A stretch of 32,102 nt of DNA from Paraphysomonas bandaiensis (lineage: Eukaryota > Protista > Chrysophyceae), in contig CBFFRP010000539.1 in the NCBI GenBank assembly GCA_965644295.1, positions 1 to 32,102 on the forward strand, in the 5' to 3' direction. Within the stretch, counting starts at the first letter, position 1. Each line of letters starts with the position of its first letter. Of this stretch, positions 2,183 to 23,000 are shown one piece after another. A program made the position numbers and the translations under genes. Under the pieces are notes generated by a model. It was not told where the DNA came from. It did not search any database and worked only from the letters and a program-made list of their open reading frames with translations.

Positions 2183-4024
2183 TTACTTGTTCTTCTTTTC
2201 CTTTGATGATTTCGGCCCAGGAATGATGCTGAGAATTACGGCAATGAGAGTGAGGGTAACATGAGGACCCCAGTAGTAGCTCCCAAGTGCACGGTTACAG
2301 TTCTCCCACGACCCCAGTGGAAATGTCTGGACAACGAAGTTGACTGCAATGAAAGTACACACCGTGCACATTGCAAAATAGAATTTGGTAAACAGAGTTT
2401 GAGGTGCTGTTGCGTAGTTCCTGCCATCGTAGCCGGGAATGAACAATGGATTCATCTTCTTTCGCCAATGACGCTCAATTGTGGTCAATACAGGCATAAA
2501 CATGAAAAACACAAAGTAGCCAGGGTACAGACCATGCCACAGGGCAGATATGAAATATGTGGCCAGAAGGCTGTTTCCGGTTCGCCCATATGTATAGCGC
2601 TCCAGCCAACCCTGAGTTCGTTTATTCCAACTGCGAGTTAGGCTCTGCACAAAAAAGTTAGTTATTAAAACCACAGAGCACACCGTGATCGCATATCATG
2701 AAATGCACTTTAGTGCACAGAACACTATTATACAATTATACCTGTGTATTATTAGCCATTTCGAAGTTCAAAATGTCAATATTTTCAACCCCTCTCCAGC
2801 TTGCAGGACTGTTACCACTGTCGGTGGCACTAGAGTACCCTGTAAACCCAAATCCACCCATAATAGAGGCTGCTTCAGCCAGCTTCCACGCAAAATAGTA
2901 TTTCTGACGGAAAGCAAAGGTGGCAATTAATGTGAAGAGAAGTCGCTCGGGAATTGTGTGCGTGGCTACGAAATCTGCCTGTGCCACTCGCGGCAGAGGG
3001 AATAATGCATTCAAGTAAAGATACAAACCCATGCAGGCAATAGCCTTGAGCAAACATAGTATTGATGGAACCAGTGATGATGGCACGGTCGCCACAACCT
3101 TAGTCGGTATTTCATTGTCGGAATCTGACTTCTTGGGGGTAGTGTTACTAGTTCGTTTAAACGCTTCTCCAGTTATACTTCGCTGATAATCAGTGAATTC
3201 AAACGCTGGCCCGGCCAATACACACGTGAAACAATACACATACCCCATGAATTCAAGAAAGCTTGGCATCTGAGTAATGGCATATTTTTTGCGAGAACTG
3301 TAGAGCTGTGACAGAAAAAAGTTTATCGTAGGTATGAGTGTATCACAAAACAAGTCAGCACATACCGTAATGTATATAAACTAACAATAATACCATTTAT
3401 GTACTTAAGATTAACACGTACCCGACTTTTCTTTTCATCAGCATGAGTGCCGAACACATTCTTTCTATCGACGGTTCCATCATACAAGTTATAAGCAAAA
3501 GAAGTCAACTTCATTGTAAAAACCATTTGTGTTCCCGTGAAGTCGAATTCATCCGACATATAAGCAACATACATGCGATAAATATGGCATGCAGTCATGA
3601 AGGACATGACGAACACAAACACAACGATATGTTGGTATTTGCCAGGAAAGAATGCACATATCATGTACGTAATCAACGTAGATATCATTGAATGAATCCA
3701 ATTGGGTCCATAAATCCATTGCATTAAATACAATCCTCCAAGAAAAGAGTACACATGTTTAAGTGTAGGATTTGGTAATACACGTAATATATATGCCATT
3801 GGATATACAAGGAATAGTGCCAGCATATACTATATACAAAATATCAATTTAATCAATTATAATAAATTCATATATTATACCTTCATCATAATTAATGGTA
3901 AGCCAAGACCTACACCTAGATATTCAATCTTTTCATCCAATGTTGGCATATGAACCAAATTAGTAGCATTACCAAGCCATGAATATTGTTCTAAATACTG
4001 AAATATTGTTCCAACAACTTCCAT
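2183..4024 (-). CDS. MBOAT-family lysophospholipid acyltransferase (LPCAT/LPLAT, Ale1/MBOAT1-like), about 525 aa; exons 4024-3881, 3829-3422, 3305-2742, 2644-2183
   Basis: Three phase-0 GT-AG introns (51, 116, 97 nt) join the ORFs in frame. Motifs: DFTGTQMVFTMKLTSFAYNLYDG, FMGYVYCFTCVLAGPAFEF, KYYFAWKLAE, WNKRTQGWL, and SALWHGLYPGY (catalytic His). C-terminal KKNK resembles an ER-retrieval signal. Confidence 0.93.
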
Positions 4025-5265: not shown

Positions 5266-6366
5266 CTAGTATGTATATGTTGCAATAACATGTGATGCAG
5301 TTGTCACGTTAATTTGTTTTTCATAGAATTTCACGATGTCATAGTAGCTACGTTGGTACATACTGGCCCTCGGCTTCCTACACGAAAACCTCGGAAACGT
5401 GGTGTCCAAAACTTCCTGGGTATAGTCTTCAAGCGTAACACACCAAAACTTGTTAATTTCTTCAACGCTTAGTGTTGTACTGTATCTAATTGCATCGGCA
5501 CGTGTCTTAAACACCATTAGATCTCGAAAGAGTCCCCAGAATACTGTGTACCGCATGTATTCGTGCTCCTTTCTGAGTTGAATGATATTCACTGCCCAGC
5601 CTATAAAACCATCCACTGTCAGATCATTCCGTTGTATCCGTTGGAGGTCTAAATCATCCTCAATTCTTGCAGATACTTGTACAGGAAGAAATGAGCGTAG
5701 CCCATATGATGTGACAGTTTTCTTGAATCGATGGACATCGCTCTCTCGTTCAGTTAGCACTGTGAGCATTGTCATATACCGTTTTCGAGATAAGACAACT
5801 GCTAGCAAAGAATCCTCAACCCAAGCAATATCACATACGAGACCTATTACTCCGGATCCCTTGCAGCGAATATAGTACTCATGTAGAGCGTTATAGCATT
5901 GGTGAGCGGACTGGATATGCTTCAGTTCAGTCTGTAGAGTGCTGAGATGACAACTCACAAAACTAACAATCGAGAGAGGCTGCCGCTCTACGCTCCATCC
6001 TGAAAAATGTTGCTGTAAAGCTCGTTTCCAATATCCAGAGCCTTCAGATGCTAGGTATCGAAAAACATCACGAGAGAAGCGGTCCACAGCTGCGAACATA
6101 CACAGTTCGTTCACGTTTAAGTACGAAGCAATTTCCGAAGCTAAATCGATACCAAGTTTCTCCCATGGCCTATCTCGTCTATTGACTGTGCTGATAGGAC
6201 CTTTGGAGTACTCTTCTGTTATATATTCTGTGATAAAGTTCCCGAAAGCAGATACATTCCCCCATAATGTAACACCTTGACGTGTACTTTCTGACAAATA
6301 TCCCGCCAAATGACGTGAATTATCATTAATAATATCGAGTAAGGTAAGGGAAAGTGGAATTGACAT
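5266..6366 (-). CDS. Intronless protein of about 366 aa: F-box-like motif followed by an SMC flexible-hinge domain of DMS3/GMI1/SMCHD1 type
   Basis: F-box-like: PWEKLGIDLASEIASYLNVNELCMFAAVDRFSRDV..YWK (about 6168-6019). Hinge: GVIGLVCDIAWVEDSLLAVVLS..TMLTVLT..GLRSFLPV..DGFIGWAVNIIQL..MRYTVFWGLFRDLMVFKTRADA..CVTLE (about 5856-5383). Start is ATG 6366 or the in-frame ATG at 6405. Confidence 0.72.
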   Translation of the reverse strand: MSIPLSLTLLDIINDNSRHLAGYLSESTRQGVTLWGNVSAFGNFITEYITEEYSKGPISTVNRRDRPWEKLGIDLASEIASYLNVNELCMFAAVDRFSRDVFRYLASEGSGYWKRALQQHFSGWSVERQPLSIVSFVSCHLSTLQTELKHIQSAHQCYNALHEYYIRCKGSGVIGLVCDIAWVEDSLLAVVLSRKRYMTMLTVLTERESDVHRFKKTVTSYGLRSFLPVQVSARIEDDLDLQRIQRNDLTVDGFIGWAVNIIQLRKEHEYMRYTVFWGLFRDLMVFKTRADAIRYSTTLSVEEINKFWCVTLEDYTQEVLDTTFPRFSCRKPRASMYQRSYYDIVKFYEKQINVTTASHVIATYTY

Positions 6367-6770
6367 GTTGAATATAATGGAGTTTATAATATCTTGTTGG
6401 AACATATCATACTTAATAGACAAACTGAAACGTAATATGACACACTGTGAGGTGGACTGCTATGATTGGTCGAATATCTTAATTACACTAATATTCTACA
6501 GAAACTTCGTTTATGTTCCATATATGGGTGTTTTTATATATCCAAATATTGGATATTTATAAAAACTGGAAATTTGTACCCCAATTTCTGGAAATATCCC
6601 CACTCCATCTGTGCTACAGAGTGATAGACATAACATCTATGAGATAGACATACATAGTAAGAATAGAGAACATAGTCATAACAAGTGGAAAGGTAGAGAG
6701 AAAGATCTCAAACTTTAACTTTATTAGTATAATTTTGATTAGTATTCTTATTCAATATTTGTATATTTTA

Positions 6771-10926: not shown

Positions 10927-11069
10927 CCTCCAGGAGATATATGGGTATCGAAGTAAATAAATTCATAATGAATAAGCAAATAATCAATGGATGATAAGAG
11001 TTACATTCACAAGGCTTTTATCGTCATTTGTCTCTGCTGCTCGAACACACCCAGCTATATAGATTGAAA

Positions 11070-14000
11070 ATGCTGGTGCCGATCTTTGTATTATTTGCAT
11101 GCTTTCATATTGCCTTATCAATATGCCCAACCAATTTTGACTTACATTACGGAGATTATTGCTTTTCACCAATCCCTCGTAGTGGAGATTATGATAGCGC
11201 TTTTGCAGGATGCCGTCAGCAAGACGGGGTTATGGTTTCAATTCATAGTTCAGATGACAACATGGCTGTCGTTGCCGCGGCTAAGATATTAGGAATTCAT
11301 TTTCCGGTATATATAGGATATTCTTTTGATGGGAAGGGTTGGGCTTGGAGTGATGGCTCACCTCTTAGCCATTATAGTAATTGGACTTCGGGGGGTTTGC
11401 AAGACCTAACATCTCGCTGCACCGGACTCCGGCAGGACGGTAGCTGGATCGCTGTAAATTGTAGAAACCATCTCGATTTTATGTGTACATCAAGAGAACT
11501 TGATGATCAAAATAAATATGTAATTTCAAAAACTAGAGGTATAAGGGTAAACTTGCAAGATATGTCTCCAACCAGCCTACCCACCGGACAACCTACAGGT
11601 CAACCAACTTGTGTTCCATCGGGTGAACCATCTGGTCAGCCGACTGGCGAGCCTTCCGGTCAACCCACATGTGTTCCTACTGGTCAGCCCAGCGGGCATC
11701 CTACTGGACAGCCATCTGGTCAACCAACTTGTGTTCCAACGGGTGAACCATCTGGTCAGCCGACTGGCGAACCTTCCGGTCAACCCACATGTGTTCCTAC
11801 TGGTCAGCCCAGCGGGCATCCTACCGGACAGCCATCTGGTCAACCAACTTGTGTACCAACGGGTGAACCATCTGGTCAGCCCAGCGGGCATCCTACTGGA
11901 CAGCCATCTGGTCAACCAAGTTGTGTTCCAACGGGTGAACCATCTGGTCAGCCGACTGGCGAGCCTTCCGGTCAACCCACATGTGTTCCTACTGGTCAGC
12001 CCAGCGGGCATCCTACCTGTCAACCTACAGGTCAACCAACTTGTGTTCCAACTGGTGAACCAACTGGTCAGCCCAGCGGGCATCCTACCGGACAGCCGTC
12101 TGGTCAACCAAGTTGTGTTCCAACGGGTGAACCATCTGGTCAGCCTACAGGACAACCTACAGGTCAACCCACATGTGTTCCTACTGGTCAGCCCAGCGGG
12201 CACCCTACCGGACAGCCGTCTGGTCAACCAACATGTGTTCCAACGGGTGAACCATCTGGTCAGCCTACAGGACAACCTACAGGTCAACCTACGTCTGTTC
12301 CATCAGGTCAACCAAGTTGTGTTCCAACGGGTGAACCATCTGGTCAGCCGACTGGCGAGCCTTCCGGTCAACCCACATGTGTTCCTACTGGTCAGCCCAG
12401 CGGGCATCCTACAGGTGAACCTACAGGTCAACCAACTTGTGTTCCAACGGGTAAACCATCTGGTCAGCCTACAGGACAACCTACAGGTCAACCTACGTCT
12501 GTTCCATCAGGTCAACCAAGTTGTGTTCCAACGGGTCAACCAACTTGTGTTCCCACGGGTGGACCATCTGGTCAGCCGACTGGCGAGCCTTCCGGTCAAC
12601 CCACATGTATTCCTACTGGTCAGCCCAGCGGGCATCCAACCGGACAGCCATCTGGTCAACCAACATGTGTTCCAACGGGTGAACCATCTGGTCAGCCTAC
12701 AGGACAACCTACAGGTCAACCTACGTCTGTTCCATCTAGTCAACCAAGTTGTGTTCCAACGGGTGAACCATCTGGTCAGCCGACTGGCGAGCCTTCCGGT
12801 CAACCCACATGTGTTCCTACTGGTCAGCCCAGCGGGCATCCTACCGGACAGCCGTCTGGTCAACCTACGTCTGTTCCATCAGGTCAACCAAGTTGTGTTC
12901 CATCAGGACAACCAAGTTGTGTTCCAACGGGTGAACCTTCTGGTCGGCCTACAGGACAGCCTACAGGTCAACCTACGTCTGTTCCATCAGGTCAACCAAG
13001 TTGTGTTCCAACGGGTGAACCATCTGGTCAGCCTACTGGCGAGCCTTCCGGTCAACCCACATGTATTCCTACTGGTCAGCCCAGCGGGCATCCTACAGGT
13101 GAACCTACAGGTCAACCAACTTGTGTTCCAACGGGTGAACCATCTGGTCAGCCTACAGGACAACCTTCAAGTCAACCTACTTCTGTTCCATCAGGTCAAC
13201 CAAGTTGTGTTCCAACGGGTCAACCAACTTGTGTTCCCACGGGTGGACCATCTGGTCAGCCGACTGGCGAGCCTTCCGGTCAACCCACATGTATTCCTAC
13301 TGGTCAGCCCAGCGGGCATCCTACCGGACAGCCATCTGGTCAACCAACATGTGTTCCAACGGGTGAACCATCTGGTCAGCCTACAGGACAACCTACAGGT
13401 CAACCAAGTTGTGTTCCATCAGGTCAACCAAGTTGTGTTCCAACGGGTGAACCATCTGGTCAGCCGACTGGCGAGCCTTCCGGTCAACCCACATGTGTTC
13501 CTACTGGTCAGCCCAGCGGGCATCCTACTGGACAGCCATCTGGTCAACCAACATGTGTTCCAACGGGTGAGCCATCTGGTCAACCAACAGGACAACCTAC
13601 AGGTCAACCTACTTCTGTTCCATCAAGGAATCCTACGTCTGTTCCATCAGGTCAACCAACTTGTGTTCCAACGGGTGAACCATCTGGTCAGCCTTCAGGA
13701 CAACCTACAGGTCAACCCACATGTGTTCCTACTGGTCAGCCTACTGGCGAGCCTTCCGGTCAACCCACATGTATTCCTACTGGTCAGCCCAGCGGACATC
13801 CTACCGGTGAACCTACAGGTCAACCAAGTTGTGTTCCAACGGGTGAACCATCTGGTCAGCCAACAGGACAACCTACAGGTCAACCTACGTCTGTTCCATC
13901 AGGTCAACCAAGTTGTGTTCCATCAGGTCAACCAACTTGTGTTCCAACGGGTGTACCATCAGGTCAGCCGACTGGCGAGCCTTCCGGTCAACCCACATGT

Positions 14001-17000
14001 ATTCCTACTGGTCAGCCTAGCGGGCACCCTACCGGACAACCTACAGGTCAACCAACATGTGTTCCAACGGGTGAACCATCTGGTCAGCCTACAGGACAAC
14101 CTACAGGTCAACCTACGTCTGTTCCATCAGGTCAACCAAGTTGTGTTCCAACGGGTGAACCATCTGGTCAGCCTTCAGGACAACCTACAGGTCAACCCAC
14201 ATGTGTTCCTACTGGTCAGCCCAGCGGGCATCCTACCGGACATCCGTCTGGTCAACCAACATGTGTTCCAACGGGTGAGCCATCTGGTCAGCCTTCAGGA
14301 CAACCTACAGGTCAACCTACGTCTGTTCCATCAGGTCAACCAAGTTGTGTTCCATCAGGTCAACCAACATGTGTTCCCACGGGTGAACCATCTGGTCAGC
14401 CGACTGGCGAGCCTTCCGGTCAACCCACATGTATTCCTACTGGTCAACCTAGCGGGCACCCTACCGGACAGCCGTCTGGTCAACCAACATGTGTTCCAAC
14501 GGGTGAACCATCTGGTCAGCCTACAGGACAACCTACAGGTCAACCAAGTTGTGTTCCATCAGGTCAACCAAGTTGTGTTCCAACGGGTGAACCATCTGGT
14601 CAGCCGACTGGCGAGCCTTCCGGTCAACCCACATGTGTTCCTACTGGTCAGCCTACCGGGCATCCTACAGGTGAACCTACAGGTCAACCAACTTGTGTTC
14701 CAACGGGTGAACCATCTGGTCAGCCTACAGGACAACCTACAGGTCAACCTACTTCTGTTCCATCAGGTCAACCAAGTTGTGTTCCATCAGGTCAACCAAC
14801 TTGTGTTCCAACGGGTGAACCATCTGGTCAGCCGACTGGTGAGCCTTCCGGTCAACCCACATGTGTTCCTACTGGTCAGCCCAGCGGACATCCTACCGGA
14901 CAGCCGTCTGGTCAACCAACATGTGTTCCAACGGGTGAACCATCTGGTCAGCCTACAGGACAACCTACAGGTCAACCTACGTCTGCTCCATCAGGTCAAC
15001 CAAGTTGTGTTCCAACGGGTGAACCATCTGGTCAGCCGACTGGCGAGCCTTCCGGTCAACCCACATGTGTTCCTACTGGTCAGCCCAGCGGACATCCTAC
15101 CGGACAACCTACAGGTCAACCAACATGTGTTCCAACGGGTGAACCATCTGGTCAGCCAACAGGACAACCTACAGGTCAACCTACTTCTGTTCCATCAAGG
15201 AATCCTACGTCTGTTCCATCTAGTCAACCAACATGTGTTCCAACGGGTGAACCATCTGGTCAGCCGACTGTCGAGCCTTCCGGTCAACCCACATGTGTTC
15301 CTACTGGTCAGCCCAGCGGGCATCCAACCGGACAGCCATCTGGTCAACCAAGTTGTGTTCCAACGGGTGAACCTTCTGGTCAGCCTACAGGACAACCTAC
15401 AGGTCAACCTACGTCTGTTCCATCTAGTCAACCAACTTGTGTTCCAACGGGTGAACCATCTGGTCAGCCGACTGGCGAGCCTTCCGGTCAACCCACATGT
15501 GTTCCTACTGGTCAGCCCAGCGGGCATCCTACTGGACAGCCATCTGGTCAACCAACTTGTGTTCCGACAGGTGAACCATCTGGTCAGCCGACTGTCGAGC
15601 CTTCCGGTCAACCCACATGTATTCCTACTTGTCAGCCCAGCGGGGATCCTACCGGACAACCTACTGGTCAACCAACATGTGTTCCAACGGGTGAACCATC
15701 TGGTCAGCCCACAGGACAACCTACAGGTCAACCTACGTCTGTTCCATCAAGTAATCCTACGTCTGTTCCATCTAGTCAACCAACTTGTGTTCCATCGGGT
15801 GAACCATCTGGTCAGCCGACTGGCGAGCCTTCCGGTCAACCCACATGTGTTCCTACTGGTCAGCCCAGCGGGCACCCTACCGGACAGCCGTCTGGTCAAC
15901 CAACATGTGTTCCAACGGGTGAACCATCTGGTCAGCCTACAGGACAACCTACAGGTCAACCTACGTCTGCTCCATCAGGTCAACCAAGTTGTGTTCCAAC
16001 GGGTGAACCATCTGGTCAGCCGACTGGCGAGCCTTCCGGTCAACCCACATGTGTTCCTACTGGTCAGCCCAGCGCGTATCCTACCGGACAGCCGTCTGGT
16101 CAACCAAGTTGTGTTCCAACGGGTGAACCATCTGGTCAGCCGACTGGTGAGCCTTCCGGTCAACCCACATGTGTTCCTACTGGTCAGCCCAGCGGGCATC
16201 CTACCGGACAGCCATCTGGTCAACCAACTTGTGTTCCAACTGGTGAACCGTCTGGTTGGCCTACAGGACAACCTACAGGTCAACCTACGTCTTTTCCATC
16301 AGGTCAACCAACATGTGTTCCAACGGGTGAACCATCTGGTCAGCCGACTGGCGAGCCTTCCGGTCAACCCACATGTGTTCCTACTGGTCAGCCCAGCGGG
16401 CATCCTACCGGACAGCCGTCTGGTCAACCAACATGTGTTCCAACGGGTGAACCATCTGGTCAGCCTACAGGACAACCTACAGGTCAACCAAGTTGTGTTC
16501 CATCAGGTCAACCAAGTTGTGTTCCAACGGGTGAACCGTCTGGTCAGCCGACTGGCGAGCCTTCCGGTCAACCCACATGTGTTCCTACTGGTCAGCCCAG
16601 CGGGCATCCTACCGGACAGCCATCTGGGCAACCAAGTGGAGTACCCTCCGGTCACCCTACCTACCAATACCCTTTAGCATTGGAGGTGTTTAGAGGAGGG
16701 AATAACTCTTTCCCCGTAGTGTGGACACCTGATAGTCTTGGATGGGCTAACTCCTCGTACCCACTATATTTGACAGTTGATGTTTTCCCCACTGACTATG
16801 GGTCTATGGCCACTCAGTGGGCTACAATTAAGGTCAACAACGTAACAGTTATGGAATATTGTACACCTGCTGAGGAATGTGGCTCGTCATATTACAACTG
16901 CTTCTATGATATGGATATATCAGATTATGTGTCTGAGCCATTGGGAGGGAGTTTAACGATTGAGGTATCAAGCACTGGTGTGACAGGAGGACCATGTGAC

Positions 17001-20000
17001 TACCTGGGCTATCCACTATACACACATCTGCAATTGAGAGGAGCTACTCCAAGCAGTCAACCTACGGGTGTGCCAACTGGCTATCCCACTGGGCAACCTA
17101 GTGCACAACCATCTGGTATTCCAACGGTCTTCCCCACTGTTGTCCCTTCGGGTCTACCGTCCAGCATACCATCTGGTCAACCTACGAGCAATCCCAGTAG
17201 TTACCCTTCTGGTAAACCGTCAGGTGAGCCCAGTTTTTCTCCTAGCGCAATTCCATCTGGGCTGCCATCTGGCTTTCCAACTGGTGAACCGACCTGTGTG
17301 CCGACATGTGTTCCAAGTGGTAACCCCAGTTGTGTACCCACTTGCGAACCCAGCAGCCTACCGACAGTTCTTCCTAGCAGTGCCCCGAGTGGACAACCTA
17401 CATCACTTCCTTCTGGGTACCCTAGTCTCATGCCTAGTAATATGCCAACTAGTCAACCGTCATGTCTACCCACAGGTATTCCCACTCGTTATCCCACGGG
17501 ACTGCCGTCTGCTTCCCCTACGGGAGAGCCGAGCACTCAACCGAGTGGGCAGCCCACTGGTGCCCCCACTTATCGACCTTCACAGATTCCAACCGGTTTT
17601 CCTAGTAAAGAACCAACCAGTGAGCCTACATGTATCCCAAGTGGAAGCCCGACGTATATACCTAGCTGTCGCCCATCTGGAATGCCAACTGGAATGCCAA
17701 CCGGCTGGCCCTCAAGTGTGCCTTCCGGAATGCCCACTACATGCCCGTCAAGTGTACCCAGTGGACAACCATCTTGCTTACCATCTGGGACACCGTCTAG
17801 CCAACCAACAGATGTGCCCAGTGGTCTACCTACAGCTGAACCTACCGCTGTGCCATCTGAGCAGCCCACCAGTCAGCCAACATCTCAACCCACTGGAAAT
17901 CCAACTTGTAGGCCAACAGGACTACCCAGTGGTAGACCTACAGGTCAGCCTACCAGTGTTCCTTCCGCTGTTCCATCTGGGCAACCAAGTGGTGTACCCT
18001 CCGGTCACCCTACCTACCAATACCCTTTAGCATTGGAGGTGTTTAGAGGAGGGAATAACTCTTTCCCCGTAGTGTGGACACCTGATAGTCTTGGATGGGC
18101 TAACTCCTCGTATCCACTATATTTGACAGTTGATGTTTTCCCCACTGACTTTGAATTGAGAGCTAGTTCCTGGGTAACAATTAAGGTCAACAACGTAACA
18201 GTCATGGAATATTGTACACCTGCTGAGGAATGTGGCTCGTCATATTACAACTGCTTCTATGATATGGATATATCAGATTATGTGTCTGAGCCATTGGGAG
18301 GGAGTTTAACGATTGAGGTATCAAGCACTGGTGTGACAGGAGGACCATGTGACTACCTGGGCTATCCACTATACACACATCTGCAATTGAGAGGAGCTAC
18401 TCCGAGCAGTCAACCTACGGGTGTGCCAACTGGCTATCCCACTGGGCAACCTAGTGCACAACCATCTGGTCAACCAACATCTATCCCAAGTAACATTCCC
18501 AGTGCACTCCCATCCACTTTTCCTTCTGGATGTCCTAGCGGATTCCCGACAGCGTTACCGACGCCCTTGCCCAGTGGTTTTCCAACTGGAGTGCCATCTG
18601 AAAGACCAACATGTGCTCCAACCATGATACCCTCTGGACAGCCCACAGGGTATCCCAGTGCTATACCCAGTGGTCATCCTAGTTACTTACCGAGTGGCCT
18701 GCCGTCAGGTACACCGACAGAACTACCTTCATCACTTCCAACTAGTCAGCCGTCAGGACAACCAACTTCAGAGCCAAGTAGCATTCCGAGCGGACCACCA
18801 ACTGGTCAGCCAACGGGTAAACCGTCTAGTGAACCTACCAGCTATCCAACTACTCTGCCATCTAGTACTCCCACTTGTATACCCAGCGGAAGGCCGACTT
18901 CCACACCATCTTTTGAGCCGTCTGGTGAGCCCAGTAGCTATCCGTCTGGTCAGCCAACTGGACATCCGTCTGGTCAGCCCACCGATATGCCTTCAAGTCA
19001 GCCATCTAGTACACCTACAGGTGAACCTACCGTCCAGCCGACGGGACAGCCTAGTGGTTTGCCCACTGGCCAACCAACTATCGTACCCACTGGTCTACCA
19101 ACTTGCATCCCTTCTTCTGTACCCAGTGGTATCCCATCTGGGCAACCTACTCGGATACCATCCGGAATGCCATCAAGTCAGCCGACTGGTCAACCAAGTG
19201 GAGAACCTACAGGGCAGCCCACTAGTTCACCTACGATTCTACCTAGTACTGTACCTAGCAGTGAACCAAGTAGCGTACCATCTGAGATACCGACAGTTCA
19301 ACCAACGGGTCGTCCAAGTGGTCAGCCAACGACTTTGCCTAGTGGATTACCGACAGGTCAACCTACTAATCAGCCGTCGTCTCAACCTACAAGCCAGCCT
19401 ACAGGGCAACCAACGGTTGTTCCCAGCGGACAACCCACTAGCGAACCGACTGGGCAACCTACATCGCGACCAACGTGCGTACCAAGTGGACAACCGTCAG
19501 GGCAGCCGTCCAGTGAACCTTCTTGTCCACCTACAGGAGTACCTTCAGAGCAACCGACATCGACACCATCAACGCAACCCACTGGACAACCTACTGGTCA
19601 ACCATCATCTCAACCCACTGGAAATCCAACTTGTAGGCCTACAGGACTACCCAGTGGTAGACCTACAGGTCAGCCTACCAGTGTTCCTTCCGCTGTTCCA
19701 TCTGGGCAACCAAGTGGTGTACCCTCCGGTCACCCTACCTACCAATACCCTTTAGCATTGGAGGTGTTTAGAGGAGGAAGAAATTCTTTCCCCGTAGTGT
19801 GGACACCTGATAGTCTTGGATGGGCTAACTCCTCGTACCCACTATATTTGACAGTTGATGTTTTCCCCACCAACTATGGGTCTATGGCTACTCAGTGGGC
19901 TACAATTAAGGTCAACAACGTAACAGTTATGGAATATTGTACACCTGCTGAGGAATGTGGCTCGTCATATTACAACTGCTTCTATGATATGGATATATCA

Positions 20001-23000
20001 GATTACGTGTCTGAGCCATTGGGAGGGAGTTTAACGATTGAGGTATCAAGCACTGGTGTGGCAGGAGGACCATGTGACTACATGGGCTATCCGCTATACA
20101 CACATCTGCAATTGAGAGGGGCTATTCCAAGCAGTCAACCTACGGGTGTGCCAACTGGCTATCCCACTGGGCAACCTAGTGCACAACCATCTGGTATTCC
20201 AACGGTCTTCCCCACTGTTGTCCCTTCGGGTCTACCGTCCAGCATACCATCTGGTCAACCTACGAGCAATCCCAGTAGTTACCCTTCTGGTCAACCAACA
20301 TCTCTCCCAAGTAAAGTACCAACAGGAGACCCAACGGGGTTGCCAACAGGGCAGCCATCTGGTTGTCCTACGTCATTTCCAACATGTATTCCTAGTGGTG
20401 CACCTAGTATTACCCCATCGAGTCAGCCTAGCGAGCAACCCACGAGTCAGCCGAGTGCTCAGCCGACGGGTCAACCTTCATCGCAGCCTACAACTGAGCC
20501 AACTGGTGAACCTACAGGTCAACCTTCTGGTAAGCCTTCATCTGAACCAAGCGCATTACCCACATTCTATCCGACCGGTACACCAAGCCGTCAGCCCAGT
20601 GGTATACCAACTTGTCAACCGACTGTTCAACCCAGTGGACAACCATCCAGCCAGCCCAGTGGGCTGCCATCTAGCCAACCCACGAGTCAGCCAACGAGTG
20701 GACCAACAAATCAACCGACAAGTGAACCCAGTGGTATACCAACTGGGCAGCCGAGTGGCCAACCTACTGAACAGCCTACACCTTCCCCTACATCTGAGCC
20801 AACATGTCTGCCTTCCGGTCAACCAACGTTACAGCCAACTGGAAAACCCACCGGGCAGCCGTCACGGGAACCAACAGGCGAGCCGTCAAGTATTCCTTCG
20901 ATTCTCCCAACAGGTGAACCGACTGGTCAGCCCTCCAGTGAGCCGTCTGGACAACCGTCAGGAAACCCGACAGGCCAGCCAACGTGTCAGCCTACCGGTT
21001 ATCCATCAGGTCATCCAACATACCGGCCTTCTGGTCAACCTAGTGGATTGCCTACCGCATTACCTAGTGGGCAGCCATCTGGCGTGCCCACTCTGCAGCC
21101 TACCAGTATTCCTTCTGGACAACCAAGTGCTCTACCTTCAATTCGACCTACTTCTCAGCCCACTGGACAGCCTTCAAGTCAACCAACAGTCGTGCCCTCT
21201 GGCGAACCGAGTTCTCATCCAACATATATGTTTCCACTGGGCTTACAGTTTACTGGTGGTGGAAGTGACTCATCTCCAGTTTTATGGGAGGTCGATGGTT
21301 TGTCATATGTGAATAGCGCTTACTCTTTGTTTCTTTCTGTTGATGTTTATCCTACAAATTTTGCAATTATAGCTAATCAGTATGCGACTATTAAAATCAA
21401 CGGAGCAGTAGTTATGGCGCATTGTATTCCTGGTGAATCCTGCGGTGATAGGTGGTACCATTGTATTGTTGATATGGATATTTCAGAATTCGTGGAAGAA
21501 CCGCTGGGTGGTTCAGTTACAATTGAGGTTTCGAGTACTGGAGTAAACTCTGGTCCATGTGACCACCAGGGTCATCCATTGTTCACTCAAATGTTTTTGC
21601 GTGAGTCGTTGCCTACAGGACAGCCAACTGGAGAGCCGTCCGGTCAGCCTACTGGGCAGCCCTCTGGGGAGCCAACGAGCCAACCAACTGGAGAACCTAC
21701 TGGTCAACCTACAGGTCAGCCCACAGGCCAACCATCTTGTCAACCCACCGGTCAGCCTACTGGCCAACCAACAAGCAATCCTACTGGTCAACCTTCTGGA
21801 AGACCTACTGGCCAGCCTACAGGGAAACCAACAGGACAACCGACAAGTCAGCCTACTGGACAACCTTCTGGACAGCCAACAGCACAACCAACGAGTGAAC
21901 CTAGTTCATACCCCACCGGACAACCCACATGTTACCCTACTGGTGAACCTACTGGAGAGCCTAGTGGACATCCAACAGGAGAGCCTACGAGTGGTCCAAC
22001 TGACATTCCTACAGGGCAACCGTCGGGTATTCCCACATGTGATCCAACTGGACAGCCTACAGGACAGCCAACATCCGCGCCGTCAGGACAACCCACAGCC
22101 CAACCCACAGGCCAACCTACAGCTGCTCCCACTAGTCAGCCGTCAGCTCAGCCAACTTGTATTCCGACCGGTATACCTTCCGGACAGCCAACTTGTCAAC
22201 CCACAAGCCAACCCACAGGGCAGCCTACTGGTCAACCAACTAGCCAGCCTTCTGGTCAGCCAACAAGTGTGCCGACGAGAGAACCAACATGCCTGCCCAC
22301 AAGCTTTCCAAGTTCACAACCTTCCGGAATGCCTTCTGGACAACCGACCTGTCAACCTTCTGGACAGCCCAGTAGCCAACCCACAGTGCGGCCGTCGGGC
22401 CAACCAACGGGGTCACCGACGGGTCAACCTACTGGAGAGCCCACTCTCCAACCAAGTAGCCAGCCGTCATCGCAACCGACAAGTGCACCAACCAGCCCAA
22501 CGAGCATACCCTCAAGTCTACCAACGACGTTTTTCGAAGTTGTAAGTGTTGTCAGTGTCACTGGTAGACAGGATATATTTGGAATCCAAGCTTATATGTT
22601 TGACGCTCCAGCAGAAACTGCATTCAAAGAACTCATTGTGTCATCCATGTCCGCAGGAGTTATACTAGCAAAAAATATTCAGATATTATCAGTAACCACT
22701 ATTTCGACACCATCTCAAGTTAATTTTTCAGTATACGAATCCCTATCGCAGTCTAGAACTGGCACTCAGAATCTGAGAAGGCACAATTCTCACAGAAATC
22801 TTGCCTTATTAAATACAATAACCAGAGTGGGATATTCAGTGAAAGCGGTTGTACCGAAGCGACAGTATGCGGATTCAAGTACATTCGCTACCGCTATGAA
22901 ACAGAGTGTCAACGACACTTTTACACAGGCATCGGTTGGTTCTGATTTCATTTCTTTATCAAGAAAGTATGGAAGTACACACTTCAACGATACAGCTGAA

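Follow-up and report, generated by a model that had tools for sequence, protein, structure and literature searches.

An expressed Paraphysomonas protein joins a predicted F-box to a DMS3/SMCHD1-type SMC hinge and probably serves as an SCF substrate receptor

The window analyzed here, that is, the whole 32,102-nucleotide stretch of Paraphysomonas bandaiensis contig CBFFRP010000539.1, carries on its minus strand a complete single-exon coding sequence (5266..6366, stop codon 5266-5268) for a 366-residue protein in which a predicted F-box precedes a predicted SMC hinge. According to the ORF list, the underlying reading frame (5266-6423, minus strand) encodes 385 residues if read from a TTG and 366 if read from the ATG at 6366, and all motifs cited in the preliminary description of this DNA were found inside it. 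Of the two, the ATG at 6366 is conserved as the start: close homologues open with the same MSI..SLLD motif. Fifteen homologues of 267 to 437 residues (353 to 437 in 14 of the 15) align with the protein end to end at 38-47% identity. They share start and end positions, and the terminal tyrosine (Y366) is invariant among the 16 close homologues. A Paraphysomonas peptide of the MMETSP1103 transcriptome (P0001, 366 residues) is 100% identical to the window protein over 100% of its length. The F-box-hinge gene is thus real and expressed, and the expression check proposed in the preliminary description came out positive with an RNA-derived product. Residues 1-64 (6175..6366, minus strand), with MSI..SLLD at their start, are predicted to be disordered (AF2 pLDDT 27-32). 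No informative neighboring gene was found within the window, and an ESM Atlas feature search with the protein returned no usable match.

Relatives were recovered from a search of 1.84 billion proteins; 168 were collected, and profiles were built from 16 close and 96 wider sequences. The family occurs in all of the named stramenopile sources that were recovered, namely a chrysophyte, brown algae, oomycetes, a labyrinthulid, and Platysulcus. Beyond the family, the closest relatives are long SMCHD1-like proteins of 1700 to 2500 residues, and no plant DMS3 orthologue was found among the 168 proteins. In a tree of the hinges, no long SMCHD1-like protein fell inside the clade holding all F-box-positive hinges, which suggests, with weak support (0.67 for the split), that the family hinges are separate from the SMCHD1-like ones. 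Two subclades of the family (P0065, P0069, P0070, and P0092; P0074, P0082, P0087, P0093, P0099, and P0104) have no detectable F-box, and no other Pfam domain was found in them. The neighbors of P0009 were not informative, and no contig encoding the Aphanomyces protein P0057 was found on record. A SIR2 gene adjoins P0169 in three contigs, probably from one species.

The F-box-hinge gene is intronless and the adjoining MBOAT gene is split. This would suit an artefact in which the ORF is just a single exon of some longer gene of the SMCHD1/GMI1 type, or else arose recently as a retro-copy or chimera; the latter idea had been put forward in the preliminary description. However, the transcript-derived peptide is exactly 366 residues long, and the homologues keep the same start and end and all close on the invariant tyrosine. 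Furthermore, two relatives that we read in genomic contigs of other genomes, one close and one distant, are likewise single ORFs, and the same architecture is found in Platysulcus, oomycetes, and brown algae alike. The gene is present in a single copy in the 62.6-Mb Paraphysomonas assembly, and no parent copy was found in this genome. Finally, the SMCHD1 orthologue of the genome lies on another contig (C352) and has a hinge of its own. The artefact is therefore effectively refuted, and we regard it as almost certainly wrong: the gene is not an exon of a longer SMCHD1/GMI1 gene, and a retrogene or chimera is not supported. Read as separate exon pieces, the C352 gene gave matches to HATPase_c_3 (8e-15) and SMCHD1_S5 (2e-25) as well as a hinge piece with TLEG-x6-G; the GHKL ATPase and the S5 transducer are absent from the 366-residue protein and present in this separate gene. 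Searched against the PDB, the C352 hinge exon piece gave only a chance match. It is the only other hinge of the DMS3/SMCHD1 subtype detected in the genome.

The F-box domain was placed at residues 66-121 (6004..6171, minus strand) by hhalign, by Pfam in relatives, and by a domain model. When compared by hhalign with 13 F-boxes that Pfam recognizes in this genome, residues 66-121 matched with a probability of 95.6% (P 1.1e-8). Pfam matched no domain in the window protein alone, even at E<=10, and a six-frame search of the genome for F-box-like domains at E<=1 gave 73 matches, all of them other than the F-box-hinge locus. Among the relatives, F-box-like and F-box were matched in 6 and 3 of the 16 close proteins (best 6.7e-4) and in 25 and 18 of the 96 wider ones (best 2.6e-8, above cut-off). 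P0141 (338 residues) was above cut-off for both F-box-like (33.9 bits) and F-box (28 bits) and also matched SMC_hinge (21.9 bits). An iterated profile detected the N-terminal domain in 82 of the 168 collected proteins, and the 96-sequence family profile matched FBXO3 and FBXW11 in the PDB at 1.8e-7, together with FBXW7, Skp2, and Cdc4. The usual F-box Leu-Pro is replaced by Leu-Gly in the Paraphysomonas protein; close relatives have LPLDL (hallmark LPxDL). The motif that trails the F-box is SGYW.

The structural comparison points in the same direction. A domain-only AF2 model of residues 60-135 reached a pLDDT of 86, and nearly all of the top 45 or so Foldseek matches listed for it were F-box proteins, most of them bound to Skp1, with Fbw7, FBXW11, Fbx4, FBXO31, Cdc4, and Skp2 at the top. 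The best-fitting F-box structures superposed with rmsd values of 0.8 to 2.9 A over 31-59 columns. Because the domain is small, the Foldseek E-values for the 76-residue model are weak (best 0.39), and the structural argument therefore rests on the make-up of the match list. The modeled domain has the three-helix F-box fold. The F-box-like stretch noted in the preliminary description is thus borne out by the hhalign probability, by Pfam-positive relatives, and by the fold of the model. Membership in the F-box family would hold through profiles and transitivity rather than through a single-sequence Pfam threshold.

The hinge, of the DMS3/SMCHD1 type, was assigned to residues 169-334 (5365..5862, minus strand) by Foldseek, VIA-align, and profile searches. 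It is flanked in the model by an entering helix (residues 133-168; 5863..5970, minus strand; AF2 pLDDT 83-87) and a leaving helix (residues 341-365; 5272..5346, minus strand; pLDDT 80-88), which are the first and second halves of an antiparallel coiled-coil stub and leave Tyr366 as the last residue. When superposed on SMC hinges that carry coiled-coil stubs, the model aligns over residues 113-366 or 130-366. Foldseek returned 52 PDB matches for the hinge at E<=1e-3, and among those listed, all were SMC-type hinges or SMC proteins, the best being DMS3 (2e-7). VIA-align gave DMS3 a Z score of 12.6 over 176 residues at 23% identity, the cohesin, condensin, Smc5/6, and bacterial hinges Z scores of 10-11 over 150-200 residues, and the SMCHD1 hinge a Z score of 7.5. 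As modeled, the protein therefore contains a two-subdomain hinge fold with an entering and a leaving helix.

Profile searches were in good agreement with this assignment. The match to DMS3 (6ois_C) improved from an E value of 0.0018 with the single sequence in phmmer to 2.7e-6 with the 16-sequence profile and 9.9e-16 with the 96-sequence profile, and the latter also matched the Thermotoga maritima SMC protein (6.9e-13) and the mouse SMCHD1 hinge 6n64 (1.1e-10). P0077, used as a stand-in for plant DMS3, had no PDB match. The window protein did not reach the threshold of Pfam SMC_hinge (PF06470), and a six-frame search of the genome at E<=1 missed the locus, finding six or seven separate canonical hinges elsewhere. 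The same domain was matched in 1 of the 16 close and 18 of the 96 wider relatives (best 1.1e-11). The Pfam check proposed earlier was thus answered in part: relatives match both F-box and hinge, but the window protein itself matches neither, and both domain calls consequently needed profiles, relatives, and structure models. By Pfam, no ATPase head is present in the 366-residue protein, and no long coiled coil is predicted apart from the two short flanking helices. The earlier claim of a hinge of the DMS3/SMCHD1 type standing without an ATPase head or a long coiled coil therefore agrees with both the fold and the profile comparisons, in which DMS3 is the top match.

The subdomain-I strand motif RSFLPV (residues 224-229; 5680..5697, minus strand), the counterpart of the SMC R.T.LPL strand, aligns to GRVTILPLD of T. 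maritima and to FDAICLENL of DMS3, and all 16 close homologues keep its R, S, F, and P unchanged. The glycine-motif site lies at residues 312-326 (5389..5433, minus strand) and reads L-E-D-Y-T-Q-E-V-L-D-T-T-F-P-R; TLDG of T. maritima aligns to it. The GX6GX3GG motif has been defined together with its role in the dimer interface, the SMCHD1 version being GX6GX2GG (PMC7458401). All four glycine positions are replaced in the window protein (D314, D321, P325, and R326), and the replacement is conserved in the family as D-x6-(D/N)-x3-P-R, with Y315, E318, L320, and P325 invariant among the 16 close homologues. In an hmmalign alignment of 125 hinge segments, the F-box-clade members had L-D-x-Y...Y-P wherever the segment aligned, and four of the SMCHD1-like proteins, namely P0152 (719 residues) and three long ones (993-2368 residues), had L/V/I-D-G where it aligned. 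The absence of the glycines after VTLE, first seen in the window protein, is therefore shared by the F-box clade wherever the segment can be aligned. By sequence, the subdomain-I strand is kept and the subdomain-II glycine motif is swapped for a family-conserved one. The G339E mutation of DMS3 breaks the hinge dimer (PMC6718625). Since none of the four positions is a glycine, the loss of the motif does not depend on which of them equals G339 of DMS3. Together with the DMS3 precedent, this loss suggests that hinge-mediated doughnut dimerization may be altered in this family.

Among known proteins, DMS3 (PDB 6OIS/6OIT) has the closest layout: it is also hinge-only, without an ATPase head, and its two short helices form an antiparallel arm (PMC6718625). 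The two proteins have in common the motifs G(F/V)(I/L)G..V and GF.G.AVN..LR.T.F..LF..L.V..T, and the window protein, as modeled, shows the DMS3-type layout of a hinge with short antiparallel arms and no ATPase. However, only the window protein has an N-terminal F-box, and its arms comprise 36 and 25 residues, compared to about 50 in DMS3. Moreover, DMS3 homodimerizes through its hinge and requires the interface glycine G339 (PMC6718625), while the window protein has no interface glycines; in plants, DMS3 acts with RDM1 and DRD1 in the DDR complex of RNA-directed DNA methylation. SMCHD1 and GMI1 have a hinge of the same broad subtype, but SMCHD1 also has a GHKL ATPase, a UBL, an S5 domain, and a long linker. 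Its hinge retains GX6GX2GG, is an obligate homodimer, and binds nucleic acids (PMC7458401). The window protein has none of these extra domains and no motif glycines, and it has an F-box instead. Canonical SMC hinges (cohesin, condensin, Smc5/6, and bacterial) share its two-subdomain fold, and the R.(T/S)FLP and TLD strands are kept; unlike these proteins, it lacks ABC ATPase heads, a long coiled coil, and GX6GX3GG. Finally, Fbw7, Cdc4, beta-TrCP, Skp2, and Fbx4 resemble the window protein in the order of their parts: the three-helix F-box lies at the N-terminus, linker helices come next, and the recognition domain comes last. The window protein differs from these SCF receptors in that its recognition module would be an SMC hinge and its F-box carries Leu-Gly.

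F-box proteins set what the SCF ubiquitin ligase acts on, usually through WD40, LRR, or Kelch recognition modules, and SMC-type hinges (SMC1-6, SMCHD1, and DMS3) are dimerization and nucleic-acid-binding modules of chromosome-organizing and silencing proteins. We propose that the window protein is probably an F-box protein with a remodeled, protein-recognizing hinge, i.e., a substrate receptor of an SCF ubiquitin ligase, this being its most likely function. Its F-box would dock on Skp1 and thereby on Cul1-Rbx1, and this predicted docking is what would make it a substrate receptor. The genome has Skp1 at two loci, one of them at positions 89594-89737 of C421, and cullin matches on four contigs. 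The recognition module would consist of the DMS3/SMCHD1-type hinge folded back on its short antiparallel stub, which would replace the usual module, and any oligomer would probably differ from the closed, doughnut-shaped dimer that SMC, SMCHD1, and DMS3 form. A protein would be a more likely partner of the hinge than nucleic acid, because the median pI and net charge of the F-box-clade hinges are 6.4 and -1, compared to 8.7 and +2 for the SMCHD1-like hinges. The hinge of the SMCHD1 orthologue would be one candidate target. As counterpoints to the SCF reading, the window protein reaches none of the Pfam thresholds for F-box or hinge and has Leu-Gly for Leu-Pro. Some F-box proteins work outside SCF.

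The same charge data bear on a second reading, in which the hinge would bind DNA or RNA and thus bring SCF, or Skp1 alone, to chromatin. SMCHD1 and SMC hinges do bind nucleic acids (PMC7458401), several basic residues never vary in the family (K195, R196, K215, K216, R224, R272, and R281), and with a pI of 8.5 the hinge of the window protein itself is mildly basic. However, the F-box-clade hinges as a group are near neutral to acidic compared to the SMCHD1-like ones, and the functionally important arginines of SMCHD1 sit in the closed-dimer pore (PMC7458401), beside the glycine motif missing from this family, so that we consider targeting to chromatin unlikely. The hinge could instead act as a decoy or cap, a more specific form of the idea in the preliminary description. 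Its subdomain-I strand would pair with the subdomain II of a partner that has the glycine motif, either the SMCHD1 orthologue or an SMC protein of the cohesin or condensin type, and this half-open heterodimer would bring SCF to the partner for ubiquitination. One half of the interface being kept (RSFLPV) and the other lost, such a hinge could bind an opened one as a one-sided heterodimer. The C352 hinge as the only other one of this subtype detected in the genome, the position of SMCHD1-like proteins as the nearest hinge relatives outside the family, and the open hinge states known for cohesin (PMC7458401) would all fit. Against this, the SMCHD1 hinge interface is described as tuned to homodimerization and shuts out the other mammalian SMC hinges (PMC7458401), and the two hinges share little sequence, the window hinge being 33% identical to P0120 across about 145 residues. 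We find a decoy or cap distinctly improbable; if true, stramenopiles would have, throughout the lineage, a switch dedicated to the turnover of a chromatin-silencing or chromosome-organizing machine.

The F-box itself is at issue in the remaining reading, a DMS3-like scaffold outside SCF, in which the hinge and stub would build a chromatin-remodeler or silencing complex, like DMS3 in DDR, and the F-box would be a degenerate helical module or a non-SCF Skp1 binder. In its favor, DMS3 is the top match by structure as well as by sequence, and it is likewise built of a hinge plus short arms (PMC6718625). The sub-threshold F-box without Leu-Pro and the two subclades without a detectable F-box would also fit. 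However, the F-box is kept across the family; it looks canonical in many members and exceeds Pfam cut-offs in several, and this family-wide conservation argues for selection on Skp1 binding. In addition, RDM1 and DRD1, with which DMS3 works, are not known outside plants. A scaffold of this kind is thus quite doubtful, and we retain the SCF substrate receptor as the preferred reading.

No description of an F-box combined with an SMC hinge was found in our literature searches, and the F-box catalogues of Toxoplasma and Dictyostelium do not mention a hinge or SMC, in line with the earlier remark that this architecture was not known from any described protein. If the receptor reading holds, a hinge fold would be used as a ligase recognition module, a use that we found in no paper, and the family would tie ubiquitination to SMCHD1/DMS3-type chromatin biology in the stramenopiles, a group to which oomycete pathogens, brown algae, and major grazers of the sea belong. 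To our knowledge, chromatin silencing has been little studied in this group. The family would also represent a natural experiment on the role of the GX6GX3GG motif, and it has members in tractable organisms, namely oomycetes, thraustochytrids (Hondaea and relatives), and Ectocarpus.

The window's DNA is eukaryotic, and its minus-strand open reading frame (ORF) at 5266-6423 encodes 385 amino acids (aa) if read from a TTG and 366 aa if read from the ATG at 6366. All strings that the preliminary description had quoted from this ORF (GVIGLVCDIAWVED, GLRSFLPV, DGFIGWAVNIIQL, RYTVFWGLFRDLMVFKTRADA and VTLEDYTQ) were found in the translation. A word-index search of 5.8 billion proteins recovered a 366-aa peptide from the MMETSP1103 transcriptome (taxid 36769, genus Paraphysomonas, chrysophyte) with 100% identity over 100% of the query. 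The gene is thus transcribed, and since the match is full length, the ATG at 6366 yields the natural 366-aa product. The assembly (62.6 Mb, 669 contigs) holds one copy of the gene.

The C-terminal half had been described as an SMC hinge of the DMS3/SMCHD1 type, and both profile and structure searches bore this out. Pfam gave no match on the window protein alone, even at E<=10. A phmmer search of the single sequence against all PDB chains found Arabidopsis DMS3 (6ois_C, E 0.0018), the match spanning the GF.G.AVN...LR.T.F..LF..L.V.KTRAD block. With A1, a 16-sequence profile including 15 homologues (267-437 aa long, all but one 353-437 aa; 38-47% identity), the DMS3 match improved to 2.7e-6 and gained the N-lobe G.(I/V)G.V block. 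With A2, the profile of 96 wider relatives, it reached 9.9e-16, followed by the hinges of Thermotoga maritima SMC (6.9e-13) and mouse SMCHD1 (1.1e-10) and by Pyrococcus furiosus SMC (6.4e-8). An AF2 model built on A1 (pLDDT 71, pTM 0.65) comprised a disordered N terminus (residues 1-64), helices (67-127), a long helix (133-168), an alpha/beta domain (173-330) and a last helix (341-365). Foldseek returned 52 PDB matches at E<=1e-3, the best being DMS3 (2e-7), and all those listed were SMC-type hinges or SMC proteins. VIA-align, a Foldseek-independent structure search of 48,161 representative chains, again ranked DMS3 first (Z 12.6 over 176 residues, with rmsd 3.8 and 23% identity). Next came the hinges of cohesin, condensin, Smc5/6 and bacterial proteins (Z 8.7-11.3) and that of SMCHD1 (Z 7.5), with unrelated helical hairpins only at Z<=7.2. 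Helices 133-168 and 341-365 correspond to the coiled-coil helices that lead into and out of the hinge in hinge constructs. In DMS3, the central hinge is flanked by two helices of ~50 residues each, which form an antiparallel arm (PMC6718625); the layout in the window protein is alike, but its helices are shorter (36 and 25 residues).

The proposed F-box was likewise confirmed, with Pfam matches in relatives, hhalign, the A2 search of the PDB and a domain-only model in agreement. Searched singly, 6 of the 16 close sequences matched F-box-like and 3 matched F-box (best 6.7e-4); among the 96 wider relatives, 25 matched F-box-like (best 2.6e-8), 18 matched F-box (best 1.9e-6) and 18 matched SMC_hinge (best 1.1e-11). 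The collected protein P0141 (338 aa) exceeds the curated cut-offs for both F-box-like (33.9 bits) and F-box (28.0 bits), and scores 21.9 bits for SMC_hinge against a cut-off of 22.5. Aligned by hhalign to 13 same-genome F-box domains passing the Pfam cut-off, the family's N-terminal block (residues 66-121, including the trailing aromatic W motif) gave a probability of 95.6% (P 1.1e-8). In the PDB, A2 matched FBXO3 and FBXW11 (1.8e-7), FBXW1A (1.9e-6), FBXW7 (1.1e-5), Skp2 (5.6e-4) and Cdc4 (1.1e-3), and also FBXO31. Residues 60-135, modelled alone, reached a pLDDT of 86, and F-box proteins, most of them solved with Skp1, made up nearly all of the best ~45 Foldseek matches listed (among them Fbw7, FBXW11, Fbx4, FBXO31, Cdc4, D3, FBXL2, FBXL5 and Skp2). 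The best-fitting of these superpose with an rmsd of 0.8-2.9 A over 31-59 columns, with weak E-values (>=0.39) because the domain is very small. The hallmark Leu-Pro is Leu-Gly in the window protein, and several close relatives read LPLDL. An iterated profile detected the N-terminal domain in 82 of 168 collected proteins.

Run exhaustively against 1.84 billion cluster representatives, an HMMER search with A1 gave 187 proteins at E<=1e-3. Of these, many have a length of 330-500 aa and are covered over both domains; some 15 are 1700-2500 aa long, matched in the hinge alone near the C terminus, and are therefore SMCHD1-like. Wherever the source of a family member is named it is a stramenopile: Paraphysomonas (chrysophyte), Ectocarpus sp. 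and Discosporangium (brown algae), Thraustotheca clavata and Aphanomyces astaci (oomycetes, with the UniRef name 'F-box domain-containing protein'), Hondaea fermentalgiana (labyrinthulid) and Platysulcus tardus, which we take to be a deep-branching stramenopile. One JGI pipeline labelled a truncated member 'chromosome segregation ATPase'; as these UniRef and JGI names show, each of the two domains has been flagged automatically in some member, the pair never. In a FastTree phylogeny of 121 hinge segments, one clade of 95 holds every F-box-positive sequence, and the long SMCHD1-like proteins all fall outside it. The fusion likely arose once, as judged from this tree, short of proof given a split support of 0.67. 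In two subclades inside the family (P0065, P0069, P0070 and P0092; P0074, P0082, P0087, P0093, P0099 and P0104; 331-576 aa), neither an F-box nor any other Pfam domain could be detected within the N-terminal 100-250 residues; here the F-box may have been lost, replaced or strongly diverged. The gene has no introns in the window, which had raised the idea of a retro- or chimeric gene. Its close relative P0009 (371 aa, 532-kb contig) and its distant relative P0169 (338 aa, 393-kb contig) are also single ORFs, and these argue otherwise. Given the wide stramenopile spread and the lack of a parent copy, the absence of introns looks like an old family property rather than a sign of recent retroposition.

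In canonical hinges, the dimer interface of subdomain II bears GX6GX3GG; in SMCHD1, the motif is GX6GX2GG (PMC7458401). In DMS3, the interface glycine G339 is essential, and G339E disrupts both the dimer and the interaction with RDM1 (PMC6718625). The first G of the motif is that of (T/S)LDG, and in profile alignments T. maritima TLDG and DMS3 SLDG align to the family's L-D-x. The four glycine positions are occupied by D314, D321, P325 and R326 in the window protein, so that all four candidate counterparts of G339 are non-glycine. The earlier remark that the glycines are missing was thus correct, and the alignments extend it to the family: Y315, E318, L320 and P325 are invariant among close members, and wherever the segment can be aligned the F-box clade reads L-D-x-Y..E.L...Y-P, with no glycine. 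L/V/I-D-G is kept in four SMCHD1-like proteins, three long (993-2368 aa) and one of 719 aa (P0152). The subdomain-I strand R-S-F-L-P-V (invariant at R, S, F and P), the counterpart of the SMC R.T.LPL strand, belongs to the best-conserved parts. By these alignments, one half of the canonical interface is kept, and a different motif, itself conserved, has taken the place of the other half.

Most economically, the protein can be read as a putative SCF substrate receptor, in which the F-box would dock on Skp1, and the linker helices (112-127) and coiled-coil stub would set a constant spacing for the hinge, the presumed recognition module. If hinge dimerisation is retained, a dimeric SCF would result, as with Fbw7 or Fbx4. 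The Paraphysomonas genome has two Skp1 loci, cullin matches on four contigs, 73 other F-box-like matches and seven canonical SMC_hinge matches at six or seven loci. A link between a hinge-type chromatin protein and a cullin ligase has precedent, since plant DMS3 is under ubiquitination control through APC/C and Drosophila condensin II is controlled by SCF-Slimb.

As to the target, the F-box-clade hinges have a near-neutral median pI of 6.4 (net charge -1) and the SMCHD1-like hinges a basic one of 8.7 (charge +2). The nucleic-acid-binding residues of SMCHD1 sit in the dimer pore (PMC7458401), adjoining the glycine motif that the family lacks. Both points favour a protein over nucleic acid, but only weakly, since the window protein's own hinge has a pI of 8.5. 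The preliminary description had proposed a hinge decoy capturing an SMCHD1-like or SMC partner. Queried with the SMCHD1-like P0120 (2212 aa), the genome matched in two places: the hinge of the window ORF (33% identity, E 8.7e-7) and a multi-exon gene on contig C352 (~360.2-367.3 kb, minus strand; G000:C352:360256-367258, loci L020/L021). Searched singly, pieces of the latter matched HATPase_c_3 (8.4e-15) and SMCHD1_S5 (2.1e-25), and a downstream piece reading TLEG-x6-G matched the second half of the family hinge HMM (5.6e-6). Because of these matches, we assign the C352 gene, known from separate exon pieces, as a predicted bona fide orthologue of SMCHD1 that has a glycine-bearing hinge of its own. 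Apart from that of the window protein, its hinge is the sole one of this subtype found in the genome, and the orthologue may be a partner of the F-box-hinge protein. Made precise, the decoy could possibly work by one-sided pairing of the family's subdomain-I strand with the orthologue's glycine-motif subdomain.

In agreement with the earlier view that the architecture is undescribed, full-text literature searches and protist F-box catalogues (Toxoplasma, Dictyostelium) gave no F-box-hinge protein, and database labels of family members are hypothetical or 'F-box domain-containing'. A hinge as putative recognition module would be new for F-box proteins; among hinge-only proteins, both the partner domain and the rewritten hinge interface are new. 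The whole falls short of a categorically new system.

Residues 1-9 (6340-6366, minus strand) form a conserved M-S-I-x-x-S-L-L-D start motif, common to the window protein and its closest homologues, which could be a degron, targeting signal or binding motif; the ~60-residue N terminus after it is otherwise variable and disordered. At the other end (residues 362-366; 5269-5283, minus strand), an invariant C-terminal Tyr lies at the tip of the leaving helix, in ..A-T-Y-T-Y in the window protein and ..A-R-C-T-Y or ..A-K-Y-T-Y in relatives. In the P0169 lineage, the F-box-hinge gene stands tail to tail with a gene for a 447-aa SIR2-family deacetylase on 3 of 3 contigs from soil and TARA metagenomes (L022:6001-8603, L023 and L024), which is no evidence of conserved linkage, since the three are probably one species.

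Directly downstream of the F-box-hinge gene, on the same strand, lies a Pfam-identified MBOAT-family O-acyltransferase gene (2183-3353, minus strand) split over at least two ORFs. Profile positions 72-226 fall at 2736-3353 and positions 222-307 at 2183-2683, which points to either a short intron (~50 nt) or a change of frame between the two. On the plus strand, a giant open frame of 4806 aa (11028-25448) lies in a block rich in G+C (50-55%; surroundings 36-40%). Its product is predicted to be a giant mucin-like surface protein, a lectin on a stalk: a C-type lectin domain (6.4e-9) lies at the N terminus, and 28 stretches match the PT repeat (1826 bits for the whole protein).
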